Shown: positions 283 to 25,720 of the stretch, piece after piece
How the letters are laid out: the number at the start of each line of letters is the position of its first letter
Numbering within the stretch: the stretch's first letter is position 1
Sequence record: NC_042116.1
Length of the DNA: 64,000 nt
Direction: 5' to 3' (one strand)
Notes under the pieces: generated by a model
Told to the model about the DNA's origin: nothing
Seen by the model: the letters and a program-made list of their open reading frames with translations, nothing else
Databases searched by the model: none
Made by a program: the position numbers and the translations under genes

Positions 283-332
283 TCAATCCAGCGAAATGGA
301 CTAACCCTATAGGGTGCCGAGATCCGCCTATT
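283..332 (+). ncRNA. Two-hairpin element E1 (candidate small RNA)
   Basis: tcca-GCGAAA-tgga ctaa accc-tata-gggt; behind TTGACA(249)-18-TACTAT(273). Confidence 0.55.
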
Positions 333-364
333 AATATATAAAAGCGAATGAGAATCATTACTAA

Positions 365-413
365 TTATAGTTATATTCCCGCACCCTCTAGGGTATCCGA
401 TTTCTCTCGTCTG
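365..413 (-). ncRNA. Two-hairpin element E2
   Basis: Minus strand cga-GAGAAA-tcg, accc-taga-gggt; promoter TTGTAT(447-442)-17-TATTAT(424-419). Confidence 0.5.
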
Positions 414-658
414 AAATAATAATATCAAAGTACCGAATAGAATACAAGGATTATTTTTGATTTTTATGAAAATAGTTCAAATCGATTTATACGTATAAAG
501 GAAAGGATTTAAAAGGCGTACAAAAAAGCGGGGTGAATGTATAGCAGTACTATAGAAACGCCGTGTAATGGTTCCTATGCATTGTGGTGGTATGAATACG
601 CATATAAAGGAAAGAAACTTATATAAGGAAAGTATTTGCAATGAATGAAAGAAAGTAC

Positions 659-686
659 TTGCAAAGGTTTAAGGTTATGATACTAT
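659..686 (+). promoter_or_regulatory. sigma70 promoter with extended -10
   Basis: TTGCAA-16-TGn-TACTAT, A-rich upstream, AGTACT overlapping the -35. Confidence 0.7.
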
Positions 687-706
687 CTATTTCGCCAACA
701 AGGAAA

Positions 707-718
707 CGCTCTTTAACA
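707..718 (+). promoter_or_regulatory. boxA antitermination element
   Basis: CGCTCTTTAACA matches the rrn/lambdoid boxA consensus; about 15 nt after the predicted start site. Confidence 0.65.
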
Positions 719-788
719 ACTTACCGGATGATTACTTGATAGTGATTCTTTACTTTAGAAATAAAGAAAAAGAAAAACGATAAAGTAC

Positions 789-816
789 TTGACGGCAAGA
801 AAGGAAAGTGTAGAAT
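789..816 (+). promoter_or_regulatory. sigma70 promoter
   Basis: TTGACG-16-TAGAAT, AGTACT overlapping the -35. Confidence 0.7.
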
Positions 817-820
817 GTTG

Positions 821-969
821 GTTATCGAAAGGCGGTCAGGTTCGCCGTATGATAGGTAAGGGTAACAGGGCAGAATACAGTACTGTTACAGAGTAGCCAG
901 AAGTGCTACTACAGCCTTATAAAAAGCTAACTAACAGTTAGTGACCTATTTACCGCCTAACGATATAAC
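821..969 (+). ncRNA. Candidate ~150-nt multibranch structured RNA
   Basis: Nested helices 821-827/961-969, 830-836/952-958, 852-857/944-949, 858-861/915-918, 862-868/883-889, 893-897/905-909, 927-932/936-941; starts at the predicted start site; no ORF. Confidence 0.55.
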
Positions 970-1001
970 GAAAAAAGTTTCTAAGAAGTTGAAAAAAGTA
1001 C

Positions 1002-1031
1002 TTGACTGATAGAAGCAAAACATAGTACGAT
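1002..1031 (+). promoter_or_regulatory. sigma70 promoter for the first gene
   Basis: TTGACT-18-TACGAT, AGTACT overlapping the -35. Confidence 0.6.
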
Positions 1032-1082
1032 GTATCCAAGCCAAACGGCTAATATAACCTAAACTTTTAAGAGGAATTACAA

Positions 1083-1736
1083 ATGACTACTACTAACACT
1101 GCAAAAGTATCTCGTGTAACTTTGAACTCAATCATTTTCGCCACTGCTCCAGTACTGGCAGCACCAGCCGAAGGTGAGACTCACAGTAAAGAAGTAATTG
1201 CACAACACAAATCGTCAATTGCTGAATTTGTATCAAATCAGGGTAAAGAGTTGGCTGGTTTTATTTTGGGTAAAGTTGAAACGCCTGATTTGATTATCGC
1301 GATTATCAAAGAAGCGGCGAAACAAATTCCAGCAGTACAAAAGCAACTGGCAGATGAAGCGGCAGTAATTGCACTTCAAGCAGAAGAACAGCGTGTTAAA
1401 GATGCTGAAGCGGCTGAATTGAAGCGGAAACAGGATGAAGCAGCATTGCAAGCTGAAAAAGACAAAATGCTTAAATTGTTAACTGACGGCGGTTTAGATT
1501 TGGCAATCGCTCAAACAATGGTAGCGGCTGGCCTTAAAGCAAAAGCTCCAGCTAATTCACCAAAAAACAGTTATGAGCGTGTCGCGGTAACCGTTGACGG
1601 TAAAGGCTACGATGTTCCAGTGCGGGGCAACATGAGCGAAGAATTGAAAGCTCTGGTAGCTAAAGATGGCGGGGATCGTGATGCATTTATCGCAAAATAC
1701 CGCAACGAACCAGCCGCACAAGAAGTTACTGAATAA
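1083..1736 (+). CDS. H-NS-like protein (divergent)
   Basis: RBS GAGGA; coiled coil then LLTDGGLD..AAGLKAK..PKNSY..G.....LK..V...G..RDAFIAK, paralleling the H-NS linker and C-terminal domain by eye. Confidence 0.55.
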   Translation: MTTTNTAKVSRVTLNSIIFATAPVLAAPAEGETHSKEVIAQHKSSIAEFVSNQGKELAGFILGKVETPDLIIAIIKEAAKQIPAVQKQLADEAAVIALQAEEQRVKDAEAAELKRKQDEAALQAEKDKMLKLLTDGGLDLAIAQTMVAAGLKAKAPANSPKNSYERVAVTVDGKGYDVPVRGNMSEELKALVAKDGGDRDAFIAKYRNEPAAQEVTE

Positions 1737-1884
1737 TATCTCAGTACTGTAATAATAGGGGGCAAACCAGCCCCCTAAGCCGTTCTAATAGTATTTTAAT
1801 ACTAACGTGTTATAGTACTATTAGAAACGCTTAAAAGTCTTTATAGAGCGTTTTATCTTATATCTTAAGTAAGGATAAACGCTT

Positions 1885-2154
1885 ATGCAATTAACCCCAA
1901 TATCTAATTTAATTGATAAAAATACTCGCATCGCTAAAACGATGACAGCCATTAGCAGAACAACATCGGTTTTTAATGGTTATCTTGCTTTTGTTGTTAA
2001 TGGTGAATTAGTACAACGTAGGATCTATGACATGGCATATAATAGTTTATATGATTCGTGTATGTATATAGTTCACAAGAAAGTTAATTATGCCGTTAAT
2101 CTTCCCTGTAAGCCTATTAGCGGAGCGTTTAACGCTGAATCACTAAAGGCATAA
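1885..2154 (+). CDS. Hypothetical early protein
   Basis: RBS AAGGA, followed by a terminator. Confidence 0.6.
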   Translation: MQLTPISNLIDKNTRIAKTMTAISRTTSVFNGYLAFVVNGELVQRRIYDMAYNSLYDSCMYIVHKKVNYAVNLPCKPISGAFNAESLKA

Positions 2155-2164
2155 GGTAACATAA

Positions 2165-2200
2165 AAAGCCCGTTAGAATAGCTCTGACGGGCTTTTTTTA
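2165..2200 (+). terminator. Rho-independent terminator
   Basis: gcccgttag/ctgacgggc stem followed by a T-tract. Confidence 0.8.
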
Positions 2201-2209
2201 TTTGTTGAA

Positions 2210-2242
2210 AGTACTTGTATTATAATCTCAGTACTGTATAGT
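2210..2242 (+). promoter_or_regulatory. Repeated early promoter cassette
   Basis: TTGTATTATAATCTCAGTACTGTA at 2215, 3477 and 4603; near-identical inverted copy at 3404-3432. Confidence 0.75.
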
Positions 2243-2276
2243 AACCGTTATCGAAACAACTGACGGACACAACAAA

Positions 2277-2939
2277 ATGAATGCATTTAAGTTAGAGCAG
2301 TATAGAATGACTTTGGAAGTACTGGAACAAATGAAAGATTGTTTAGACCGTGGCGAGACTTATACCACTGTTAAAGGCAAGCCGTTCAACGTTACAAGGC
2401 AATTCGGTATTTGCTGGCACGTGTACGCTCATACGCCTAACCAGAACGTGACAGGGATCGGCACTGACTTTATGTGTCCTGCTTTTGCTGATATGGGCTT
2501 AGATATAGCGTATCCGGTGGAGTGTCAAACAACTGGCAGCCGCGATCAAATGCGTCAGGCATTCAGTGTACAGCGTAACATGTATGACGACAACACGATC
2601 CACGGTGCAAACCGGATCAAGCTGGTGGATTCACTGATCCAGTACTACCGCGAAAAGATGGAAACGCCGATCACTGTTACCATGTATGAACATTATTACA
2701 ATCAAGCCTTGACAGAAATGAAAAGGCGTGATTCAGCTAATGAAGCCGTATGGGATGTTTTGGATTTTGAGAACAATCAGATCTGGCGTGAACTGGCGTT
2801 AAAGATTGTTGACGAAGATCCTACACTGTCAGAAGTGGATCACGCTGCTGGTATTAACTACCCTGATGATCTAACGTTGGAAAATGTAGTTACTACTAAC
2901 TTACAGGAACGAATCCGCGAAGCATTAGAAAAGTTATAA
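2277..2939 (+). CDS. Hypothetical early protein
   Basis: 220-aa ORF with its own promoter and RBS. Confidence 0.8.
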   Translation: MNAFKLEQYRMTLEVLEQMKDCLDRGETYTTVKGKPFNVTRQFGICWHVYAHTPNQNVTGIGTDFMCPAFADMGLDIAYPVECQTTGSRDQMRQAFSVQRNMYDDNTIHGANRIKLVDSLIQYYREKMETPITVTMYEHYYNQALTEMKRRDSANEAVWDVLDFENNQIWRELALKIVDEDPTLSEVDHAAGINYPDDLTLENVVTTNLQERIREALEKL

Positions 2940-2950
2940 TCTTTACAAAT

Positions 2951-2986
2951 AAGGGGTTGACGGTTCAATCCCTTTTATAGTACTAT
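2951..2986 (+). promoter_or_regulatory. Fused terminator-promoter cassette (also ~3246, 4481, 9137, 9751, 11188, 11595, 12111)
   Basis: GGGTTGAC-loop-GTTAACCC-TTTT type hairpin carries the -35; the -10 follows the T-tract. Confidence 0.8.
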
Positions 2987-3017
2987 GTAATCACACCAAA
3001 CGAAAGGGGTTACATAA

Positions 3018-3233
3018 ATGAGATTAAGTGAGATTAGAAAAGTACTGAAGGAACTTAACAAGCTGGCGAAAGAATCGGGGAACCTCGATCCAGATATTAA
3101 GTTTTGGAGTGATGATATGGACACTGATTTACTATTAGAACTTTGTCCTGCTGATGATCTCAGTGATTCAGTACTGAAAAGCGGTAATATTCAAATAAGA
3201 TTGAATGAAGTACTTAACCCAAAAGTTAGATAA
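3018..3233 (+). CDS. Hypothetical early protein
   Basis: Own promoter and RBS. Confidence 0.7.
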   Translation: MRLSEIRKVLKELNKLAKESGNLDPDIKFWSDDMDTDLLLELCPADDLSDSVLKSGNIQIRLNEVLNPKVR

Positions 3234-3285
3234 TCTTTACAATTGCGGGGGTTGACAGCCTCCGCTTTTTTATGGTACTATAATA

Positions 3286-3336
3286 TCAATCCAGAGAAAT
3301 GGACTAACCCTAGAGGGTGCCGAGATCCATCTATAG
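3286..3336 (+). ncRNA. Two-hairpin element E3
   Basis: tcca-GAGAAA-tgga, accc-taga-gggt; promoter TTGACA(3252)-18-TACTAT. Confidence 0.55.
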
Positions 3337-3349
3337 AAAATTTAGTCCT

Positions 3350-3398
3350 TAATAGATATAGTTCCGCACCCTCTAGGGTATCCAATTTCTCTTGTATA
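3350..3398 (-). ncRNA. Two-hairpin element E4
   Basis: caa-GAGAAA-ttg, accc-taga-gggt; promoter TTGTAA(3432-3427)-17-TACAAT(3409-3404). Confidence 0.5.
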
Positions 3399-3532
3399 TA
3401 AGTATTGTACAGTACTGAGATTATAATTACAAGGGGTAAACAGAAATAAAAATTAAAATTAAAACGAAAAAAGAACTTGTATTATAATCTCAGTACTGTA
3501 CAATTCTCTATATCGAAAACGGGAGAAATGAT

Positions 3533-3988
3533 ATGAATTCAAAACAGTTCCAAGATGCAACAAGAGAAACATTTTTAAAGTACTTTCCTCATGGTCACAT
3601 AAGCATTTCTATGTTGGCAATAGGTGGTGGTTGTAATATCTTTTGTGGCTTGATTGGAGACATTAATGATGTAGGTGGTAAGATCCGCATGAATGATCCT
3701 GTAACGGTACGGGCTTATATTCATGATAACTTTTCATTTAATGATGAAAGTACTGAATTGGAAAACGTTGTTATTGAGTTCGATGGTTCGTGGATCTCAG
3801 TACTGCCAGACAATCCGCATCATTATTGTCAATCCCACAAGGTGCCAAGTCGCAAGATTAACGCAGAACCTAAAAAGGCATTAAGTAATTTGGATAAGTA
3901 CTTTAAACGATTAAAGGACTGTGTAACAGAGCAAGCAGGATTAAATCGCATTATTCAGCAGGATAAGATCCCAGCGAAATATCTATAA
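3533..3988 (+). CDS. Hypothetical early protein
   Basis: Promoter and RBS GGGAG. Confidence 0.8.
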   Translation: MNSKQFQDATRETFLKYFPHGHISISMLAIGGGCNIFCGLIGDINDVGGKIRMNDPVTVRAYIHDNFSFNDESTELENVVIEFDGSWISVLPDNPHHYCQSHKVPSRKINAEPKKALSNLDKYFKRLKDCVTEQAGLNRIIQQDKIPAKYL

Positions 3989-4063
3989 TATATTGTCAAA
4001 AGTACTTGCATTGTATAAGCGAGTACTTTACAATAAGTTATCGTTAATTGAGAGGATTCGAAT

Positions 4064-4474
4064 ATGTTACATGTTAAAGGTTTTTCTGAGGGTGGTTATT
4101 GCTTTATGATTGGTGATAAGCCTGTTTCTGTTGTTGAAGCATTGCAGAAAAATGGTAAGAAATTTAACAAGAATACATTAAACGCTTTAAATAGAAATAA
4201 TCTTGCTAATGAAAGCGATCTTGTGTCATTTGAGTTACAAGTACAATCATTACATAAAGGATTAACACCTGAATATGTAATTCAAATTTTACGCAATGAA
4301 TATAATATTGATTTTAATAATGATTTTCATGAGTTAAGTTCTGCCAGCGTACTGGATTTATTAACAGTATATCATATTGCACAATATCGAGCACCCTCAC
4401 CATGTAATCGTGATGGTTCGCCAATGCGTTATTTTTACCAGTACTTACAACGCTTCATAGAAAAGAAAAAATAA
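4064..4474 (+). CDS. Hypothetical early protein
   Basis: Promoter and RBS GAGG. Confidence 0.75.
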   Translation: MLHVKGFSEGGYCFMIGDKPVSVVEALQKNGKKFNKNTLNALNRNNLANESDLVSFELQVQSLHKGLTPEYVIQILRNEYNIDFNNDFHELSSASVLDLLTVYHIAQYRAPSPCNRDGSPMRYFYQYLQRFIEKKK

Positions 4475-4520
4475 TCAAATAAGGGGTTGACTTCGGTTAA
4501 CCCTTTTTGCTATACTAATA

Positions 4521-4570
4521 TTACTCCAGAGAAATGGACTAACCTTATAAGGTGTATAAGTGTACCTATA
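4521..4570 (+). ncRNA. Two-hairpin element E5
   Basis: tcca-GAGAAA-tgga, acct-tata-aggt (compensatory change); promoter TTGACT(4487)-18-TATACT. Confidence 0.55.
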
Positions 4571-4662
4571 ATAAAATAATTAAAATTCATACAAAAAAGT
4601 ACTTGTATTATAATCTCAGTACTGTATAATTCTTTATATCGAAAACAAACGAGGGTTTTTAA

Positions 4663-5085
4663 ATGAGAACATGTAAAGAGTGTGGGAACAATTGCAACGT
4701 ATTATCTAATGGTGTTGTCCATCATTACAACGAGGATGATAAAATTGATTATGATCTAGATGGGGATCATGTTGCAATACCTGAATTATCTGATTCTGAA
4801 AACAACATGTTAAATCCAATTCTTCAAAGTACTTTTAATTTTAATGGTGATGTTCCTTGTATTAACTACGCCGCGAATGGTGGAGGTTATGAAACTTACC
4901 AGTACTTCATTTGTGCTGATGGTGGATGTTTAGGAATTGGAACAGTAATTAATGAGTTTCATAAAGTAAACTTTAATGATCCTGATGATAAACAATGGCA
5001 CATTGTAGGGGTTGACGTGAATTATGAAAATACTAATCTGATAGATGATCACACAGGGGATTATATACCAGTAGCATATAGTTAA
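4663..5085 (+). CDS. Hypothetical early protein with N-terminal CxxC
   Basis: Promoter and RBS. Confidence 0.75.
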   Translation: MRTCKECGNNCNVLSNGVVHHYNEDDKIDYDLDGDHVAIPELSDSENNMLNPILQSTFNFNGDVPCINYAANGGGYETYQYFICADGGCLGIGTVINEFHKVNFNDPDDKQWHIVGVDVNYENTNLIDDHTGDYIPVAYS

Positions 5086-5123
5086 CACTACAACGGGGAT
5101 CATTGATCCCCTTTTGAGGTTAT

Positions 5124-5384
5124 ATGAATTTGTTTTATAGTACTAGAAAATTAGTAGTTTCATTTGATTGTAATTCTGATAAAATACATTGTGTAATATA
5201 CAGAAAAGGAATTCCCCGTTCTGATAACTGGAAAGTACTACAATCCTATACAATCAAACGTAAAGGGTTTAAACAGTTAGATGACCGTACACAAAAGGCA
5301 TGTTTACGGCAAGTACTTAAAGCCATGCGTAACCGTATAACGCAAGCCTTACATGTTGCATTAACTACAAAAGATATTTTATAA
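5124..5384 (+). CDS. Hypothetical early protein
   Basis: RBS GAGG. Confidence 0.65.
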   Translation: MNLFYSTRKLVVSFDCNSDKIHCVIYRKGIPRSDNWKVLQSYTIKRKGFKQLDDRTQKACLRQVLKAMRNRITQALHVALTTKDIL

Positions 5385-5433
5385 TATAATGAAAAAGTAC
5401 TGGACAATGCTCCGGTACTTTGTTATAGTACTT

Positions 5434-5483
5434 ACATCGAAGAGAAATTCGAATAGCCCATAGGGTTCAGGGGTATATCTATT
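5434..5483 (+). ncRNA. Two-hairpin element E6
   Basis: tcgaa-GAGAAA-ttcga, gccc-ata-gggt (G-U pair); promoter TGGACA(5401)-17-TATAGT. Confidence 0.5.
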
Positions 5484-5570
5484 AAAAATAATTAAAATTA
5501 AAATGAAAAAGAACTTGCATTATATTATGGTTATGGTAATATATGTATATCGAAACGGGAGGTTAAAGAA

Positions 5571-5639
5571 ATGAAACTACGTTATCAATGGCTGTTGTTT
5601 GCTTTGTTTATCCTTATTACCTGCGTAAACTTTGATTAG
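5571..5639 (+). CDS. 22-aa hydrophobic peptide MKLRYQWLLFALFILITCVNFD
   Basis: First ORF after a promoter, RBS GGGAGG; below the ORF-track cutoff. Confidence 0.55.
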   Translation: MKLRYQWLLFALFILITCVNFD

Positions 5640-5649
5640 GGGTTATATT

Positions 5650-5991
5650 ATGATGATTGTTAATTTTGGTGATGATATCAATTTCAATAGTATTAAGCAT
5701 ATTATTGAAAATAGTCAATCTGTATCTATTACTTTATGTTCTGGCGATGGTGATGATTTTACGGTGATAGAGCGTGAAAGAAGTAAATTTGCTGGTTTTC
5801 ATGAGGCTGATCTTATTGTTATTAGTACTGTACGGAATGCTAATGGTGATGGTATCTATGTATATCCTGAATACTTCACTATTGAACAGGCAGACACTGC
5901 TATTGAAGCCTTAAAAATAAGGGCGAGTGATACTAACATTAAATCATCTGAATTATCGGATTCATTAACTGATTTATTAGAATCGGAATAA
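5650..5991 (+). CDS. Hypothetical early protein
   Basis: ORF track, start trimmed to the RBS. Confidence 0.7.
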   Translation: MMIVNFGDDINFNSIKHIIENSQSVSITLCSGDGDDFTVIERERSKFAGFHEADLIVISTVRNANGDGIYVYPEYFTIEQADTAIEALKIRASDTNIKSSELSDSLTDLLESE

Positions 5992-6056
5992 CATATTAAA
6001 AGTACTTGCATTATATTAGCGAGTACTTTATAATAAGTTATCAAGTGAGGTACACA

Positions 6057-6104
6057 ATGAAATGGTTAATTATAGCAGTACTGATTTACATTATCTTTTT
6101 TTAA
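6057..6104 (+). CDS. 15-aa hydrophobic peptide MKWLIIAVLIYIIFF
   Basis: First ORF after a promoter, RBS GAGG. Confidence 0.45.
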   Translation: MKWLIIAVLIYIIFF

Positions 6105-6123
6105 TCAAGAGGAAGTATTAAAA

Positions 6124-6333
6124 ATGGCACATAAAGATCGTCGTTACAATGTTAACCCTGAATTTACCGGACACGAATCAGGCAAGAAACAATTTGTTAT
6201 TCGTTTTTGTGGTGATTTTGTTTCTTCGCATTCAAAGCGTGATGAAGCAGAAAAAGAGATCGCCCGATGGAAAAGTACTGGAACCGTTCCACATATCGGA
6301 AAGCAATGGGATAATCTAGTTGAACCTGTTTAA
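6124..6333 (+). CDS. Hypothetical early protein
   Basis: RBS GAGG, terminator downstream. Confidence 0.7.
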   Translation: MAHKDRRYNVNPEFTGHESGKKQFVIRFCGDFVSSHSKRDEAEKEIARWKSTGTVPHIGKQWDNLVEPV

Positions 6334-6395
6334 TTAATCAATATTAATAGTACTGGATATTTCACCAGTACTGTTTTTTTATACAGCATAATATA

Positions 6396-6446
6396 TAATA
6401 GATACATTTTCGCACCCTGTGGGTCAAAGACATTTCGCTGTCTATG
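6396..6446 (-). ncRNA. Two-hairpin element E7
   Basis: gaca-GCGAAA-tgtc, accc-aca-gggt; promoter TTGACA(6480-6475)-17-TATTAT(6457-6452). Confidence 0.55.
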
Positions 6447-6568
6447 AAGTAATAATACAGTATTTTGATATACGTGTCAAGGATTAAATTAAAATTAAAA
6501 CAAAAGAAAGTACTTGCATTAAGTATGAAGTACTGTATAATCTTTTATATCGAAACGGGAGAATTAAA

Positions 6569-6835
6569 ATGAGTAACGCATTGAAAGCCATGATTTCGTT
6601 GGTAATTTCAGTACTGATAACCTTTATAATATTAACTGCGGCGAGAGATGATGTTCTGTGGCGGTTAACCATGTTAGGATATGAAATTGAAGATACATGG
6701 TATTCTTTTTTGACATATGGCCTTAATGGGATATATGCTATATTAATGGTAGGTTGTTTTTATATTTTGTTTTGTTTAATGTTTTATATTACAGGGGGCA
6801 GTAATGAGAGTACAACCAATCCAGCCAATCATTAA
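6569..6835 (+). CDS. Small membrane protein (2 TM)
   Basis: Two hydrophobic segments; promoter and RBS. Confidence 0.7.
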   Translation: MSNALKAMISLVISVLITFIILTAARDDVLWRLTMLGYEIEDTWYSFLTYGLNGIYAILMVGCFYILFCLMFYITGGSNESTTNPANH

Positions 6836-6974
6836 GTTAGCGAATAGTACGGTCAAGAATGAATATTCAAAAATTGTTGTTGACATTCCGTGTAGTACTG
6901 TGGTATCATTAGGTTCTTACAAATCGTGTGATTTGTATAATTCAATTTATAAACAATAAAAGGTAAATTTAAAT

Positions 6975-7832
6975 ATGGGTAAGTTCATTAGTTATGGTAT
7001 TCTTGCGATTATTGTATTCGTTGGCTTGGGTGCATTGTTTGGTTCGTGGTACACGGTTGATCAGCAAGATCGTGGGGTAGTACTAACGAATGGTAAAATT
7101 ACCAGTATTGCAGAACCTGGTTTGAACTGGAAAATGCCATTTATGGATTCTGTTGTACAAATTCCAGTCACTGGACAAAATAAAAGTTATTCGAATCTAA
7201 AAGCATATAGCCGAGATCAACAACCGGCAGATATGACTATTTCTGTATCATTCTCAGTCCCAGCGGCTAAGGTAGGGGAATTATATAGTACTTTTGGTGA
7301 TATTGACAATCTAACTACTCGTGTTATTGATCGTCAAGTACCACAAGCTGTTGAAAATGTTTTTGGTCAGTTTAATGCGATTTCAGCAGTACAAGATCGT
7401 AATAAGTTAGTTACTAACTTAAACATTGCAATTAAAAAGGCAATGGAAAACTACCCAGTAGTAATTGAGAGTGTACAGGTTGAAAACCTATCATTCAGTC
7501 CAGCATATGAAAAATCAATTGAAGAACGTATGCAAGCAGAGATCGCAGTTACAAAGCGTGAACAGGACTATGCACAGGCTAAAATTTCAGCATCTATCAC
7601 AGTTGCGAATGCACAAGCTGACGCTGATAGCCAGTTAGCAAAGGCAACGGCAGCAGCTAAAGCAACACGCCTACAGGGTGAAGCTGATGCAGCAGCAATT
7701 AAGGCGAAGTCCGAAGCACTAAACAATAATCCACAACTTGTACAGTTGGCGGCGGTGGATAAATGGGATGGTGTACTACCTACTCAAATGGTTCCATCTG
7801 CTACAGTGCCGTTTGTGAATCTAAACAAATAA
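6975..7832 (+). CDS. SPFH/band-7 (prohibitin-like) membrane protein
   Basis: N-terminal TM, YTVDQQDRGVV..GK, EPGLNWKMPF, coiled-coil tail, KWDGVLP. Confidence 0.9.
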   Translation: MGKFISYGILAIIVFVGLGALFGSWYTVDQQDRGVVLTNGKITSIAEPGLNWKMPFMDSVVQIPVTGQNKSYSNLKAYSRDQQPADMTISVSFSVPAAKVGELYSTFGDIDNLTTRVIDRQVPQAVENVFGQFNAISAVQDRNKLVTNLNIAIKKAMENYPVVIESVQVENLSFSPAYEKSIEERMQAEIAVTKREQDYAQAKISASITVANAQADADSQLAKATAAAKATRLQGEADAAAIKAKSEALNNNPQLVQLAAVDKWDGVLPTQMVPSATVPFVNLNK

Positions 7833-7842
7833 GTACTATCAC

Positions 7843-7871
7843 AAAAAGCCTCGCATTGTCGAGGCTTTTTA
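7843..7871 (+). terminator. Rho-independent terminator
   Basis: gcctcg/cgaggc stem flanked by A- and T-tracts. Confidence 0.75.
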
Positions 7872-7964
7872 TTATCTGAATAATTAAAATTAAAACGTAA
7901 AAAGTACTTGCATTGCATGAGCGAGTACTTTATAATACTTACATCAACCACAAGAGGCAACAAC

Positions 7965-8321
7965 ATGAAAACTGAATTTTTCGCGACAAGAACACTGGCA
8001 CGTAACGCGGTAGAAGCTCTTAATGGTAAGTTTAAAGATTTTGGTAAAGATGCTCCTACTGGTGAACGTTGGGGGGTGCTGGTGGATGAAGTACTACCAG
8101 TACAAAAGGAACAACCTGTACTTGCAGAAGAAAAAAGTAATCTTGACGTACACCTTGATTTTCTTAGTACTGTAGCAGAAGATGCAGCAAAAGCATTGAA
8201 TCAGCCAACTGGCATTCGTGGGGAACAAACGTTAACAACACCAAATAAGAAGCCTGTACGGGTTATGTGGCGTCGTTCAATTGTGGCGGTACGTTTGTCG
8301 GCACTACTGGCAAAATCGTAA
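7965..8321 (+). CDS. Hypothetical early protein
   Basis: RBS GAGG at the trimmed start. Confidence 0.75.
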   Translation: MKTEFFATRTLARNAVEALNGKFKDFGKDAPTGERWGVLVDEVLPVQKEQPVLAEEKSNLDVHLDFLSTVAEDAAKALNQPTGIRGEQTLTTPNKKPVRVMWRRSIVAVRLSALLAKS

Positions 8322-8370
8322 CACAAACCAGTGGGGGCGGTATAATGCCCCCTTTATTAATCGAGATCAT

Positions 8371-8613
8371 ATGAAAAAAGTTAAAGTTGATAATACACAA
8401 TTACGCATACATTTCAAGGCACAAACAAAAGTACTTGATAAGGCTATTCGTATTGTGAAAGATTATAATAATGGAAGTGTTAGAGCTAGACGGTTAGGGT
8501 GTGGTTTATTTTCAGTAATAGATGTATCACATAACGAACGGATCGTTATTAAAAATAAAACACTTAATTTAATGACTCATGAACAATATAATAAATTCGT
8601 CGAACGACGTTGA
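8371..8613 (+). CDS. ParE/RelE-like small protein
   Basis: Basic 80 aa; pattern RR......S.DV....RIV.....LMTHEQYN recalls the plasmid/ICE ParE-like family. Confidence 0.4.
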   Translation: MKKVKVDNTQLRIHFKAQTKVLDKAIRIVKDYNNGSVRARRLGCGLFSVIDVSHNERIVIKNKTLNLMTHEQYNKFVERR

Positions 8614-8669
8614 CATAATCCCCTAAATATGTATAATAATAATTATACACGATTAGGGGATTTTTTATT

Positions 8670-9131
8670 ATGCCTGATAAATTTAAACATAAGAATGGTG
8701 CTACTATAGCAGGTCATGCCGATAAGTGGAGTGATGAAAATCGTTCAAGTACTAGCCATGATGCAGGTCAAGGCAGTAAAGGAAGTAGAAATCAAGGTAC
8801 AGGAATTAAAGGTAAACAAAACGCAATGCCATCACAAGGTATTGATACATCCAAAATGGATAAGTCCGAAAAATTAAAGTACTTTAATTCATTGGGTTTA
8901 CTTCAACCAAAACAAGAATTATCTATTAAAACATGGCCTGAAACATTACGCAAAGTGTTTAAAGATGAACCTGTATACATTAAAGATATTACTACAGCGA
9001 TAAAATCTATTGAACCAGCAAGATATCAACAAGCCATTCAATCAGCATTCAATGCTTATAACGAAATTACAAAACAATCAGATGATGTTTATGATATATA
9101 TGCCGCAATTATGCAAGCATTACAAGGTTAA
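8670..9131 (+). CDS. Hypothetical protein
   Basis: TTGACA-17-TATAAT promoter upstream. Confidence 0.65.
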   Translation: MPDKFKHKNGATIAGHADKWSDENRSSTSHDAGQGSKGSRNQGTGIKGKQNAMPSQGIDTSKMDKSEKLKYFNSLGLLQPKQELSIKTWPETLRKVFKDEPVYIKDITTAIKSIEPARYQQAIQSAFNAYNEITKQSDDVYDIYAAIMQALQG

Positions 9132-9197
9132 AAATAAGGGTTGACTTAGGTTAACCCTTTTGCTATTGTATCAGTACACAAACATAAGGAATATATT

Positions 9198-9548
9198 ATG
9201 AAAAAGTTATTATTACTCGCTGCATTGTTTAGTACTACAGTTTCAGCTCAAACATTTACATGTGATAACTTTACTCTGTATCAAGGTATCGGGAATAATC
9301 AATACAGACAAGTAGATGATGCAGGTGTACAATCATCTTTGATTATTACTATTGAAAGTACTGAACCATTGATTACCGTTTCTGTACAAGGTGATAAAGA
9401 AGTAGTGCAATTCTGGAAAGATTATAATGTATACAGAAATGTAACTGGTGAAATTTCACAAGATGGTAATAATTTTATAATGAAAACAGCTATACAAGAT
9501 AGTACTGGATTTTATATACCTGTTAAAATTGAGTACCATTGTAAATGA
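9198..9548 (+). CDS. Exported protein with signal peptide
   Basis: MKKLLLLAALFSTTVSA signal sequence. Confidence 0.75.
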   Translation: MKKLLLLAALFSTTVSAQTFTCDNFTLYQGIGNNQYRQVDDAGVQSSLIITIESTEPLITVSVQGDKEVVQFWKDYNVYRNVTGEISQDGNNFIMKTAIQDSTGFYIPVKIEYHCK

Positions 9549-9742
9549 AATTATCATTTCAATTTATGCAAAAACGTGTACAGTACTTAAGTACTAAACT
9601 TAAAGCATCATTTGAATTACAATATACTATTAACCAGAATTATCATTTAATGAAGAATGGAAGATTCATTGTTATGGATCAACCGCTTGAAGTACTGGAA
9701 ATAGTAGTAAGTGCATTATTAAGTAATAACATTAAAAAATAA
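9545..9742 (+). CDS. Hypothetical protein
   Basis: 4-nt overlap with the upstream gene. Confidence 0.55.
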   Translation: MKLSFQFMQKRVQYLSTKLKASFELQYTINQNYHLMKNGRFIVMDQPLEVLEIVVSALLSNNIKK

Positions 9743-9787
9743 TTAAATCAAGGGTTGACAGATGTTAACCCTTTTTGCTATACTACT

Positions 9788-9838
9788 ATCAATCCAGCGA
9801 AATGGACTAACCCTATAGGGTGTATAGTTATGTCAGTA
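9788..9838 (+). ncRNA. Two-hairpin element E8
   Basis: tcca-GCGAAA-tgga, accc-tata-gggt; promoter TTGACA(9755)-18-TATACT. Confidence 0.55.
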
Positions 9839-9947
9839 CTTTTATTATATGCATAGAAAAAAGAATTTAAAATTAAAATGAAAAAGTACTTGTGTTAGAT
9901 GCTGGAACTGATAGAATGTAGTTATTGAAACAACGGGAGTAAATGAA

Positions 9948-10187
9948 ATGGCTAATAAAGAAGTGGAATTTAAAATTAGAAAATGGTCAGATACTAACGG
10001 TCGTCCATTTGATGTAGTGCTGGTGGATCATTTAAAGAACAATCAGCATTTTCAGCCTAATGTTGAATTTAGTACTATCGAACATGCTGAAAAGCATATG
10101 GAAACTTTGAATACTTTAATTCAAAATCATCCTGACCGTATCAACTTTATTCGTGACCATTGGCCTGTTGATGCTGGTATAGAATAA
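9948..10187 (+). CDS. Hypothetical early protein
   Basis: Promoter and RBS GGGAG. Confidence 0.7.
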   Translation: MANKEVEFKIRKWSDTNGRPFDVVLVDHLKNNQHFQPNVEFSTIEHAEKHMETLNTLIQNHPDRINFIRDHWPVDAGIE

Positions 10188-23659: not shown

Positions 23660-24472
23660 TTGATGTTTTTAAAATTCTTTTTAACACATGAAGATTCAAA
23701 TACTTCAAAAGGTTGGTCTATAGGAAATACTTTATTAGTTAGTACTCATAATGATCATAAGAAAGAACTATATGAAACTACTAATTTTCATAATGTATTA
23801 AGTAACTTAGCATTTCATATGAAATCAACAAATGTACATACTGTTGATAAAGATTATAGAGTATTTTTAATAAATGTTTCAGATGAAGCCATGTTCCAGT
23901 TAGAAATGTTATATATTCCAGAAAATAGTTTTTGTACATATAATATATTAACAGGTAAAATTGGTTTTGGTGATTCAGAAAGGAATGCGATTTTAGCAAG
24001 TTTAGATGAAAAAAATGGTATGAGTTTATCAGGTTGGGTTAAAAATGACAATAAGAATTCATTATTTTTCGATTTTAATGTAACCTCAACCAAGTTAATA
24101 GATATGGACGAATACCAACTTACTGTTCCAGATACATTTTATGATCAAGTACTTAATGAATTAAGACCTTACATATGTCAAGAAAAAATACATTTATTAA
24201 AAGTTTTTGGTCAATATGTTTTATATAATAAAACTGCTTTAAATAATTATTTAGATTTATATTTTGAAAATTTAAATTCTTCTGGTTCAGAAAAGAAAGA
24301 AATTGAAATACAATATTGTCAATTAACTAGAATACAAATGGTTTTAGCTATCAAACTATTCATGGAAGATGATAAAGATTTCATTTTATATAAAGATGAA
24401 TTTCCTGATGAATACTATTCAATAGGTGAATTGTGTAGAAAAATAATGAACGTTTCAGGTGAAACGTTTTAA
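23660..24472 (+). CDS. Hypothetical protein, weak FQ-motif relative
   Basis: SDEAMFQLEMLY. Confidence 0.7.
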   Translation: MMFLKFFLTHEDSNTSKGWSIGNTLLVSTHNDHKKELYETTNFHNVLSNLAFHMKSTNVHTVDKDYRVFLINVSDEAMFQLEMLYIPENSFCTYNILTGKIGFGDSERNAILASLDEKNGMSLSGWVKNDNKNSLFFDFNVTSTKLIDMDEYQLTVPDTFYDQVLNELRPYICQEKIHLLKVFGQYVLYNKTALNNYLDLYFENLNSSGSEKKEIEIQYCQLTRIQMVLAIKLFMEDDKDFILYKDEFPDEYYSIGELCRKIMNVSGETF

Positions 24473-24494
24473 AAAATTATGCTATAATATACAA

Positions 24495-25190
24495 GACAGC
24501 ACATCGCTGTCTTTTTTTAATTGAGAAAAACTCTGGATGGCTTTGTTAAGCAAAGATGTTTAAAACCTGATCCTATCGAAAAGTAGATGGCAGATGAGTA
24601 TTCCATTCAGTACGAACAGCAAAAGAAACCCGTTAGAAGTACGTGCAGTCATACAAAGAGACATAAGACACTGAGATCACGGCAATGCGGCTGTATAAAG
24701 CATGACAGTACTACATAAGTTCATGCCTAGATAGACATATAGGATCGCACCTACCTAATGTATAAGGGAGTCAAAAAATGCGATTGATTTATTACAATAT
24801 AGATCCGTCCAGATTTTGACAAGTACTTAAGCTGTTCATGTAGCTTGAGTATTCAGTGTGGCAATGTATAAAACCACGACCGTTGTATAGAACCGCGATA
24901 GAAAGAAACAGGACAACCCGCTTTCACTCTTTTATAGAAATTCGTGACATGAAATTACTACGACTATCATCGTCAGTTTTTCTCCCCACCCGATGGGGGG
25001 ATGAAAATACATTAACAAATCTCGTCAGTATTATAAACAGAAGTACTATTCAGTACTATATTAATTAAGAAATTTAAATCACAAATGAACGTAGTGCAAA
25101 CGAAGTTCATAAGTGATTTACTGGAACATCGTAGATGTTCCTTGTATAAATGAGAATCGGCAAAGTACTGATTCTGTAACAGTGAGATAT
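24495..25190 (+). ncRNA. ~700-bp structured non-coding region (large RNA and/or replication origin)
   Basis: No credible ORF; long-range helices with G-U pairs; 3' cluster of hairpins. Confidence 0.5.
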
Positions 25191-25192
25191 AA

Positions 25193-25720
25193 ATGAAGAT
25201 TGTATATAAATGCAAAGATACGGATCAAGTATTAACATCCGTAGATATGAGTACGTTTAATGGTTATATGATTCAAGTAGAAAACGGAAACAAAATTAGT
25301 AATATAACTGAATTAAGTAATAATTTTGTTCTTTCTAAAATTGAGTTAAGACCTACTAAAAAGCCACTCATACATAAAGTTGAATACAATGGTCATATAG
25401 AATACCGATACAACAATAATAATGTTAGTAGTGTTTATTATGAATTTAACAATAAAAAATACGGAGAGTATCAGAAGTATGATTTAAATGGAGTACTGTT
25501 GGATAGAATTTTTTATTTTGATGGTTTGGACATTACTACAGAAATTATGCAATTTATTGGTTATAAAAACGGGTTAACATCATTTAAAGATTATAAATTT
25601 AAAGAAGATGAACTGTTTAATATAATGATGAAGTACGGTTTTTATTTTAGATTTTGTAATGACTCGGAACGGGAAAGTTCTGATTTTGATCGTATTAATG
25701 AGTACTGTCAATACATATAA
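25193..25720 (+). CDS. Hypothetical protein with a MORN-like segment
   Basis: KYGEYQKYDLNGVL; C-terminal EDELFNIMMKYG. Confidence 0.65.
   Translation: MKIVYKCKDTDQVLTSVDMSTFNGYMIQVENGNKISNITELSNNFVLSKIELRPTKKPLIHKVEYNGHIEYRYNNNNVSSVYYEFNNKKYGEYQKYDLNGVLLDRIFYFDGLDITTEIMQFIGYKNGLTSFKDYKFKEDELFNIMMKYGFYFRFCNDSERESSDFDRINEYCQYI

Follow-up and report, generated by a model that had tools for sequence, protein, structure and literature searches.

What function is held by a stretch of phage DNA in which no recognisable gene can be found? This question is raised by a gap in the genome of Yersinia phage fHe-Yen9-04 (genus Eneladusvirus, 354,378 bp), of which we analysed the first 64,000 nucleotides (genome positions 1-64000 of record NC_042116.1, hereafter the window). 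The gap, at 24473-25192, lies between the gene g046, which ends at 24472, and g049, which starts at 25193. With a cut-off of at least 75 aa it is the longest stretch of the window without an open reading frame (ORF), excluding the first ~14 kb, and a previous reading of the letters alone (hereafter the sequence-only reading) had rightly picked it out as the largest gene-free gap outside the early region. That reading proposed a large structured non-coding RNA at 24495-24960. Comparison of relatives indicates, about as firmly as comparison allows, that the gap holds one member of a family of promoter-driven RNA elements with two domains and at least five pseudoknots. The layout of the element suggests the start of DNA replication.

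A family of RNA elements in jumbo phages

The element in the window runs from its promoter (24459-24488) to ~25141, so that the extent proposed earlier proved too short; its size is ~0.5-0.65 kb, and the GC content inside the gap is 38-42% against 25-29% in the flanks. It is one of five paralogous copies in fHe-Yen9-04, at ~24.5, 93.3, 174.3, 260.4 and 334.7 kb, which we name c24, c93, c174, c260 and c334 by genome position in kb, c24 being the copy in the window. This five-copy nature goes beyond the single-locus view from which the sequence-only reading had started. All five lie on the + strand, which also carries nearly all genes of the phage. Their mutual identity is ~70-79%, and common near-invariant sequence blocks are separated in all of them by hairpins whose arms change together. 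The four internal gaps between the copies measure 68.8-86.1 kb. With five points placed at random, every internal gap would measure at least 68.8 kb with a probability of (1-4*68.8/354.4)^5 = 5.6e-4.

Beyond this genome, the element was found at 249 places in 62 phage records. Ten relatives that were examined, including GAP32, CBB, a 121Q-like genome (348.5 kb), XbC2, Kaldavass, A4, fENko-Kae01 and Hallingskeid, have four or five copies each, 47-115 kb apart and at matching positions. In a tree of all copies the paralogues cluster by genome position across Yen9-04, GAP32, CBB, XbC2 and Kaldavass, and the five-fold arrangement therefore predates these genera. The genes next to the element differ among the five loci, those downstream being unrelated to one another, and the c174-type copy of Kaldavass has genes of opposite orientation on its two sides (baseplate hub, endonuclease VII) and runs into convergent genes. 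Taken together, these neighbourhoods point to a stand-alone unit rather than a leader that belongs to any one gene. We collected 82 distinct full-length copies, drawn from phage records, IMG/VR, metagenomes and bacterial genomes, on which the counts given below are based unless another number is stated.

The family appears not to have been described before. In Rfam 15 the whole window, searched by cmscan at gathering thresholds, had no match, and a search of 24300-25400 with E values up to 10 returned chance hits only, the best of which (E 0.13) was on the wrong strand. The families without a match include ROOL, GOLLD, OLE, HEARO, raiA, group I and II introns, RNase P, tmRNA, 6S and T-box. ARAGORN found neither tRNA nor tmRNA, and a full-text search of the literature yielded no description of the element. 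In more than 60 phage records the annotation at the element loci is blank or consists of spurious small ORFs on either strand. The distance from the first helix, P1, to the second of two short boxes near the 3' end is 434-613 nt (median 500), and the proposal of an undescribed large phage RNA in the size class of ROOL and GOLLD fits these results.

A folded RNA body maintained by compensatory change

As a full-length MAFFT alignment gave a poor consensus in RNAalifold, helices were instead detected by a column-pair scan combined with mutual information under average-product correction. About 20 helices covary, five of them pseudoknots, and most pairs occur as two to five pair types. In a control in which the 3' partner was moved by 1-3 columns, pairing fell to 10-60%. 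An independent run of RNAalifold on the 3' domain of 32 diverse sequences found H6, H7, P9, P10 and H11 again, and 27 of its 34 pairs there show compensatory double changes. The helices of the body contain 327 G-U against 40 A-C oppositions (8:1); selection therefore acts on the + strand RNA, in agreement with the direction of the promoter. The RNA-level selection that the sequence-only reading had deduced from tolerated G-U pairs is thus backed much more strongly than by those pairs alone. The features of the body, with the percentage of canonical pairing, are as follows.

24533-24540/24603-24610, + strand: P1, which encloses H1 and H2 in the 5' junction (24533..24613); 90%, 6 of 8 pairs covary
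24541-24555, + strand: H1, variable hairpin inside P1
24567-24593, + strand: H2, hairpin inside P1 with conserved loop GAAAAGUA at 24578-24585
24598-24600/24611-24613, + strand: pseudoknot PKa; 100%, 2 of 3 pairs covary
24616-24620/24690-24694, + strand: P2, in the core of the 5' domain (24616..24770); 100%
24625-24636 and 24678-24691, + strand: near-invariant single strands of the 5' domain, GAAACCCGUUAG and CACGGCAAUGCGGC
24637-24677, + strand: variable subdomain of the 5' core
24685-24687/24736-24738, + strand: pseudoknot PKb; 100%
24700-24705/24721-24726, + strand: H3; 97%, 6 of 6 pairs covary
24712-24716/24758-24762, + strand: pseudoknot PKc, which starts in the H3 loop; weaker, 71%
24730-24741 and 24763-24770, + strand: near-invariant single strands of the 5' domain, GAUAGACAUAUA and UAAGGGAG
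24740-24743/24750-24753, + strand: H4; weaker, 62%
24770-24776/24814-24820, + strand: H5, which carries the movable module UACAAUAUAGAUCCGUCCA (region 24770..24820)
24824..24953, + strand: 3' domain, made up of H6, H7, P8, P9, P10, H11 and PKd
24824-24833/24842-24851, + strand: H6; 95%
24835-24841/24947-24953, + strand: pseudoknot PKd, which starts in the H6 loop; 100%, 7 of 7 pairs covary
24857-24860/24875-24878, + strand: H7; 93%
24877-24885 and 24914-24921, + strand: invariant strands of the 3' domain, CGACCGUUG and CAACCCGC
24882-24886/24913-24917, + strand: P8; 100%
24894-24898/24942-24946, + strand: P9; 100%
24901-24905/24921-24925, + strand: P10, crossed by P8 to form a pseudoknot; 100%
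24928-24930/24936-24938, + strand: H11; 98%

The closing pairs of H5 covary (24771/24819), and the whole helix is only 68% canonical because of indels. The position of its module UACAAUAUAGAUCCGUCCA varies: H5 and H11 are alternative sites among the copies, and one copy has the module at both. Such variation is typical of a peripheral element docking into a compact fold. As a separate observation, the seven-base sequence of PKd differs among c24, c93 and c260 and is the same in c174 and c334; were this contact intermolecular, its sequence would set which paralogues can associate.

Five nested pairings had been read from the c24 letters alone, and only the two hairpins among them survive comparison, H3 and H6, in which every pair covaries. 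The helix 24532-24540/24805-24813 is canonical in 59% of the copies, the conserved partner of 24533-24540 being 24603-24610 instead; 24569-24576/24739-24746 reaches 66%, and the conserved pairing there is local, between 24572-24577 and 24586-24590; 24644-24650/24689-24695 reaches 61%, with 24690-24694 pairing instead with 24616-24620. On this comparison the three long-range helices are accidents of the c24 copy that compete with covarying partners.

These data also bear on the notion that there is no RNA here at all, and that the gap is explained by small protein genes, by a repeat that acts as DNA only, or by pairings that arise by chance in AT-rich sequence. GenBank does list two coding sequences in it, g047 (43 aa, 24587-24718) and g048 (70 aa, 24856-25068), neither with a product, and the single-sequence fold is only moderately better than that of shuffled sequences (z -2.5 for the + strand; the - strand, at z -0.5, is no better). 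The frame of g047 is intact in just 2/82 family members and that of g048 in 1/82, lengths being mostly not multiples of three, and both are for this reason almost certainly annotation artefacts. With this decay of the ORFs, the compensatory changes in ~20 helices and the G-U excess on the + strand, the notion is refuted, and we give it next to no weight.

The promoter and the 5' end

The extended -10 promoter that had been noted ahead of the gap is a conserved part of the element, and is directly followed by a hairpin detected in a scan for terminators.

24459-24464, + strand: -35 GTGAAA of the sigma-70-type promoter (24459..24488)
24480-24488, + strand: extended -10 TGCTATAAT of the same promoter, after an 18-nt spacer
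24493..24520, + strand: 9-bp hairpin with a U7 run

A sigma-70-like site with its -10 at the same alignment position is present in 82/82 copies; TGnTATAAT is kept in 67 and the 18-nt spacer in 72, and transcription of c24 likely starts near 24495. The hairpin with U7 is restricted to c24- and c93-type copies, the same layout being kept in the CBB orthologue. Since it sits between the -10 and the RNA body, transcripts from the conserved promoter would begin inside it, and it may be the terminator of g046, the 5'-terminal stem-loop of the RNA, or both; it might also attenuate the RNA or make its 5' end more stable.

Two boxes that change together

Past the body the conservation continues into a 3' module with the following features.

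24964-24976, + strand: box 1, CUAUCAUCGUCAG, in the weak hairpin H12 (24960-24963/24970-24973) and followed by a U run (region 24960..24981)
24986-24991/24995-25000, + strand: C-run/G-run hairpin H13
24995-25003, + strand: invariant G run GGGGGGAUG
25016-25028, + strand: box 2, CAAAUCUCGUCAG, after a linker (region 24986..25028)

The order past box 1 is H13, the invariant GGGGG(G)AUG, the linker and box 2. The G run is invariant in all 82 copies, and the motifs of H13, the G run and box 2 occur genome-wide at the five copies only. H13 shows 123 G-U against 3 A-C oppositions and is therefore selected as + strand RNA, so that some transcripts must pass the terminator site that follows box 1.

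The co-evolution of box 1 with box 2 preserves identity between them, not complementarity. They are direct repeats, 50-85 nt apart, with the pattern A-Y-C-(A)-N-Y-G-U-C-A-R, and their variable positions change together and to the same base. The bases at 24964/25016, 24967/25020 and 24971/25023 are identical in 82/82 copies each, those at 24976/25028 in 76 and those at 24970/25022 in 53. Even unique variants are found in both boxes, such as UGUCAG in copy L052 and a G at the N position in c334. By parsimony on the family tree, five positions show 16 changes that both boxes share in branch and in resulting base, where chance would give ~0.75.

What keeps the boxes identical? A protein or an RNA guide shared by both was considered as the cause and rejected: paralogues within one genome differ at the variable positions, and a search for a third segment or internal guide found no column elsewhere on the same strand that covaries as the complement of the boxes. 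In the absence of such a column a shared partner would have to be the opposite strand. Two explanations remain, namely that the RNA of one box may pair with the strand complementary to the other, be it template DNA or antisense transcript, or that some process may copy one box from the other.

The succession of promoter, structured RNA, terminator and further conserved sequence, together with the evidence from H13 that transcription can continue past the terminator site, could also be that of a cis-acting leader, either a giant attenuator sensing a signal or a modifier that makes polymerase ignore terminators, like the put RNAs of HK022. Four of the five copies are co-directional with the genes downstream, as a leader would be. 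Against this, those genes are unrelated among the copies, the c174-type copy runs into convergent genes and the RNA of the bacterial islands described below into a convergent repressor gene, and two copies, c24 and c334, have no terminator hairpin after box 1 and only the U run. Known antitermination RNAs are moreover only 60-120 nt long, and a leader leaves the identity of the two boxes unexplained. We regard this role as improbable.

A tail of conserved hairpins

The hairpin cluster that the sequence-only reading had placed downstream of its RNA domain turns out to be part of the same conserved element. It forms a tail of 130-170 nt past box 2, whose structure is conserved in phage and bacterial copies; in c24 the tail spans 25042..25141.

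25042-25057, + strand: palindromic hairpin
25076-25119, + strand: long hairpin H16, with inner stem 25085-25090/25105-25110
25123-25141, + strand: mini-hairpin H17, with an 8-bp stem and a C-GUA-G triloop

Across the family the tail consists of a small hairpin with the loop UGUUAAA, H16, whose arms covary and whose loop is built around ACGNAGUGA, and H17. Tails fold better than their shuffles (mean z -2.5). A C-GNA-G hairpin is found on the + strand of 53/80 tails, on the - strand of 2/80 and in 1.2% of random 170-nt genome windows, a 55-fold enrichment; in the remaining third of the copies H17 has a loop of another kind, for example a GNRA-type tetraloop. The stem of H17 is 5 bp in most copies and 8 bp in c24.

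Two side observations concern this region. In the copies L002 and L004 of the c174 and c260 regions (~174840, ~260952), and in the bacterial copies L102, L108 and L111, a conserved AUGAAUUGA(G) opens H16, its GAAUU pairing with AAUUC 40-60 nt downstream; read as an ORF it would give Met-Asn-stop. Just past H17, at 25143-25151 and 40 nt before g049, TATAAATG resembles the T4-type late promoter TATAAATA; orthologues have TATAAT at this position instead.

Copies in bacterial integrative islands

When 185,579 species genomes were scanned by pattern, full-length copies turned up in five of them and on one small contig. The hosts are Citrobacter amalonaticus, Silvania hatchlandensis, Enterobacter chinensis, an Enterobacteriaceae isolate and a Buttiauxella metagenome-assembled genome (MAG), with one copy per bacterial genome. 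Among complete Escherichia coli genomes 2/5,426 have the element, in both cases on the chromosome. Every bacterial copy sits in an integrative island of 8-10 kb, all in Enterobacterales, with a recurring backbone in the order integrase, element, CI-like repressor, 286-aa protein, LprI-domain protein, small serine invertase and cargo; examples are L113 (Citrobacter amalonaticus, ~300-10000), L115, L102, L099, L128 and L167 (E. coli EEC_W5). The element is co-oriented with the integrase, and the CI-like repressor (S24 peptidase) is convergent to it. The integrase is a large serine recombinase in some islands and a tyrosine integrase in others, which are two unrelated families, and the cargo varies: Kiwa (KwaB), GmrSD or a DUF4326/DUF488/OB set. 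The Citrobacter island is inserted between ppdD and nadC, and the E. coli island adjoins ffs. No recognisable replication gene was found in the island backbones. In the tree one bacterial group stands beside the c174/c260 phage paralogues and the other apart, which suggests more than one transfer.

The islands themselves have the look of a hitherto undescribed vehicle for defence genes, or else of a phage satellite. Just after the element of the Citrobacter island lies the gene of a 165-aa protein that has a weak relative in the window at 1404-1670 (+ strand; E 4e-6, 31% identity), within an open frame of 221 aa close to the left end of the genome, which hints at gene exchange between island and phage. 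This protein is not similar to the gene that follows the element in the phage, and no phage relative of the 286-aa backbone protein was found.

The proximity of an integrase and a small serine invertase raises a further possibility, that the element is self-processing or was formerly mobile, the boxes being the sites at which one ribozyme or recombinase cuts and joins, with the intervening stretch excised as RNA or DNA. Direct-repeat identity is what sites of one catalyst, or sites exchanged by recombination, would show. Yet 0/82 copies have a single box or lack the intervening stretch, the integrases come from two unrelated families, the phage copies are stably syntenic, and no guide sequence covaries with the boxes. 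The chance of this being correct is, in our view, smaller still than that of a leader.

Possible roles: an RNA-primed origin of replication or a trans-acting RNA

We put at roughly 0.4 the probability that each unit is a replication origin with a pre-primer comparable to the RNA II of ColE1. This reading ranks first because it alone makes use of the spacing, the common orientation, the matching positions, the identity of the boxes, the G cluster, the mini-hairpins and the capture by islands. Early in infection, host RNA polymerase would make the folded pre-primer RNA. Its G run and box 1 would then anneal to the template strand at box 2, which the equality of the box sequences would permit, and there seed a persistent RNA-DNA hybrid; G clusters favour R-loop initiation. 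The boxes would have to stay identical because an RNA copy of one anneals to the template of the other. The hybrid would be processed to a primer for rightward DNA synthesis, and the displaced + strand could fold into the tail hairpins, which would serve as signals for single-strand initiation or helicase loading. The small bacterial islands might use their single copy to replicate, perhaps only while such a phage is infecting the cell. The fullest version, in which the GAP32/CBB/121Q jumbo phages have five evenly spaced RNA-primed origins, the ornate pre-primer re-anneals 50-85 bp downstream by its own 3' box, and defence islands have captured one such origin and amplify on infection, is as a whole doubtful.

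A primer of the RNA II kind had been one of the two proposals of the sequence-only reading. The identical boxes, the invariant G run, the inclusion of the hairpins in the element and the even spacing speak for it indirectly; the lack of an antisense promoter and of plasmid copies does not. The observations that weigh against an origin are: 1) No internal or antisense promoter site is common to more than 18/82 copies, 18/82 being also the count of the best minus-strand position, so that there is no equivalent of RNA I. 2) The element is present in 0/72,556 plasmid records, where a replicon dependent on the host only would be expected. 3) Five pseudoknots and long invariant single strands go far beyond the needs of any known primer RNA, and look like those of a ribozyme or of an RNA that binds a ligand or protein. 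4) In most copies a canonical terminator hairpin is inserted just after box 1. 5) GC and AT skews follow gene orientation only and give no separate origin signal. 6) G-T pairs make up 6.8% in the tail stems and 6.2% in the RNA body, so that the tail could simply be RNA, this measure leaving RNA and DNA indistinguishable. 7) The H17 of some paralogues falls between the -35 and the -10 of a possible sigma-70 promoter (in c334 TTGACT, 17 nt, TACAAT). Public runs labelled as RNA that match 5-16% of the element's words are short contigs of relatives, possibly DNA; they give neither ends nor strand and prove nothing either way.

Several of these points would be natural for a trans-acting ornate RNA, be it a ribozyme, the RNA of a ribonucleoprotein, a self-assembler like ROOL and GOLLD or an RNA that serves as decoy for some factor of host or phage. 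Five genes would supply it in large amounts early on, and defence islands would keep a copy since the RNA helps or hinders infection. This explains the fold best, with its ribozyme-like complexity, seen in the five pseudoknots, the unpaired invariant strands and the module that has two alternative peripheral sites. The strong promoter kept in every copy and the absence from plasmids fit as well, and the terminator after box 1 would in most copies yield a discrete RNA of ~450-480 nt. ROOL and GOLLD, which are also phage-associated and of the same size class, form RNA-only cages (PMC12286853). A trans-acting RNA leaves unexplained the even spacing and matching positions across genera, the identity of boxes 50-85 nt apart that have no complement on the same strand, and the conservation, only at these loci, of sequence 170 nt past the terminator. 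We consider it a possible alternative, held tentatively and ranked below the origin.

Significance

Large RNAs with such conserved tertiary structure are rare, and most have proved to be catalysts or machines. With at least 82 natural variants, five paralogues per genome and relatives in bacterial defence islands, the present family is a good target for structural and functional work. Besides the family as such, the corrected helix map of c24, the co-evolution of the boxes by identity, the tail with its GNA mini-hairpin and the negative results on plasmids and antisense promoters appear to be new. If the units are origins, they would be the first to be mapped in a widespread group of giant phages, and would extend RNA-primed initiation beyond ColE1-type plasmids, T4, T7 and mitochondria. 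The identity rule of the boxes would then have a mechanistic reason, directly testable by mutagenesis, and the islands would point to a new mode of coupling between mobile defence islands and phage.

Comparison with known systems

The closest functional parallel to the proposed origin is offered by plasmid ColE1, in which a G run upstream is reported (Masukata and Tomizawa 1990) to serve in the same way against a C run further downstream. Its RNA, started from a promoter ~550 bp upstream of the origin, enters a hybrid that persists, and helicase loading takes place on the displaced strand (PMC5043065). The element shares with it a host-polymerase promoter that precedes the proposed start by ~0.5 kb (533 nt here from the presumed start of transcription to the end of box 2, 550 in ColE1), a long folded non-coding RNA, a G run and the lack of an initiator protein gene nearby. 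In both, a stretch of the RNA equals downstream DNA and could anneal to the template, with hairpins beyond it on the strand that is, or here would be, displaced. The two differ in that there is no sequence similarity and no conserved RNA I promoter, and that the element is on no plasmid but in five copies on a 354-kb lytic phage genome, often with an internal terminator. RNA II has simple stem-loops, unlike the five pseudoknots and invariant cores found here, and the repeat here is a box of 10-13 nt, not a G/C run only.

In the R-loop origins of phage T4 (oriF, oriG) a promoter transcript stays hybridised and primes the leading strand. They use promoters of the middle mode together with a short unwinding element, are not known to need a structured RNA, and are no paralogues related in sequence. 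Like the proposed origins, they are several on a large T4-like myovirus genome, depend on a transcript of host RNA polymerase and send the leading strand along the direction of transcription. The element differs from them in its sigma-70-type promoter, its structured RNA and its sequence-related paralogues.

The mini-hairpin of the tail can be likened to the GCGNAGC, CCGAAGG and GCGGAGC hairpins; DNA mini-hairpins of the GCGNAGC type are unusually stable and occur at the priming sites of phage G4 and its relatives, in ssiA of RSF1010 and in the promoters of the N4 virion polymerase (PMC13037366). As in the signals of G4, St-1, alpha3, RSF1010 ssiA and N4, H17 has a 3-nt G-N-A loop closed by C-G and is present on one strand only. 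Unlike them, it lies in double-stranded phage DNA downstream of a putative RNA gene, and a third of the copies have another loop.

As an RNA, the element has the features by which large ornate RNAs are described, being more than 400 nt long and non-coding, with many conserved helices and pseudoknots, and kept across taxa. With ROOL, GOLLD and OLE it has in common a length of 0.5-0.8 kb, many pseudoknots, association with phages or prophages and the lack of coding potential (PMC12286853). In contrast to these, it does not match their Rfam models, has its own strictly kept promoter, occurs as five evenly spaced paralogues per genome, and carries after its body a conserved 3' module of boxes, G run and tail. 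Long non-coding RNAs (lncRNAs) supported by RNA-seq have been reported from the related jumbo phage PA5oct of Pseudomonas (PMC7318152). These (L096, 14452-14902; L097, 1117-1735) were considered as relatives of the element and rejected, as they have neither homology nor common motifs with it and so lend it no transcript evidence by proxy. At least two different kinds of large non-coding RNA are therefore present among the jumbo phages of this clade.

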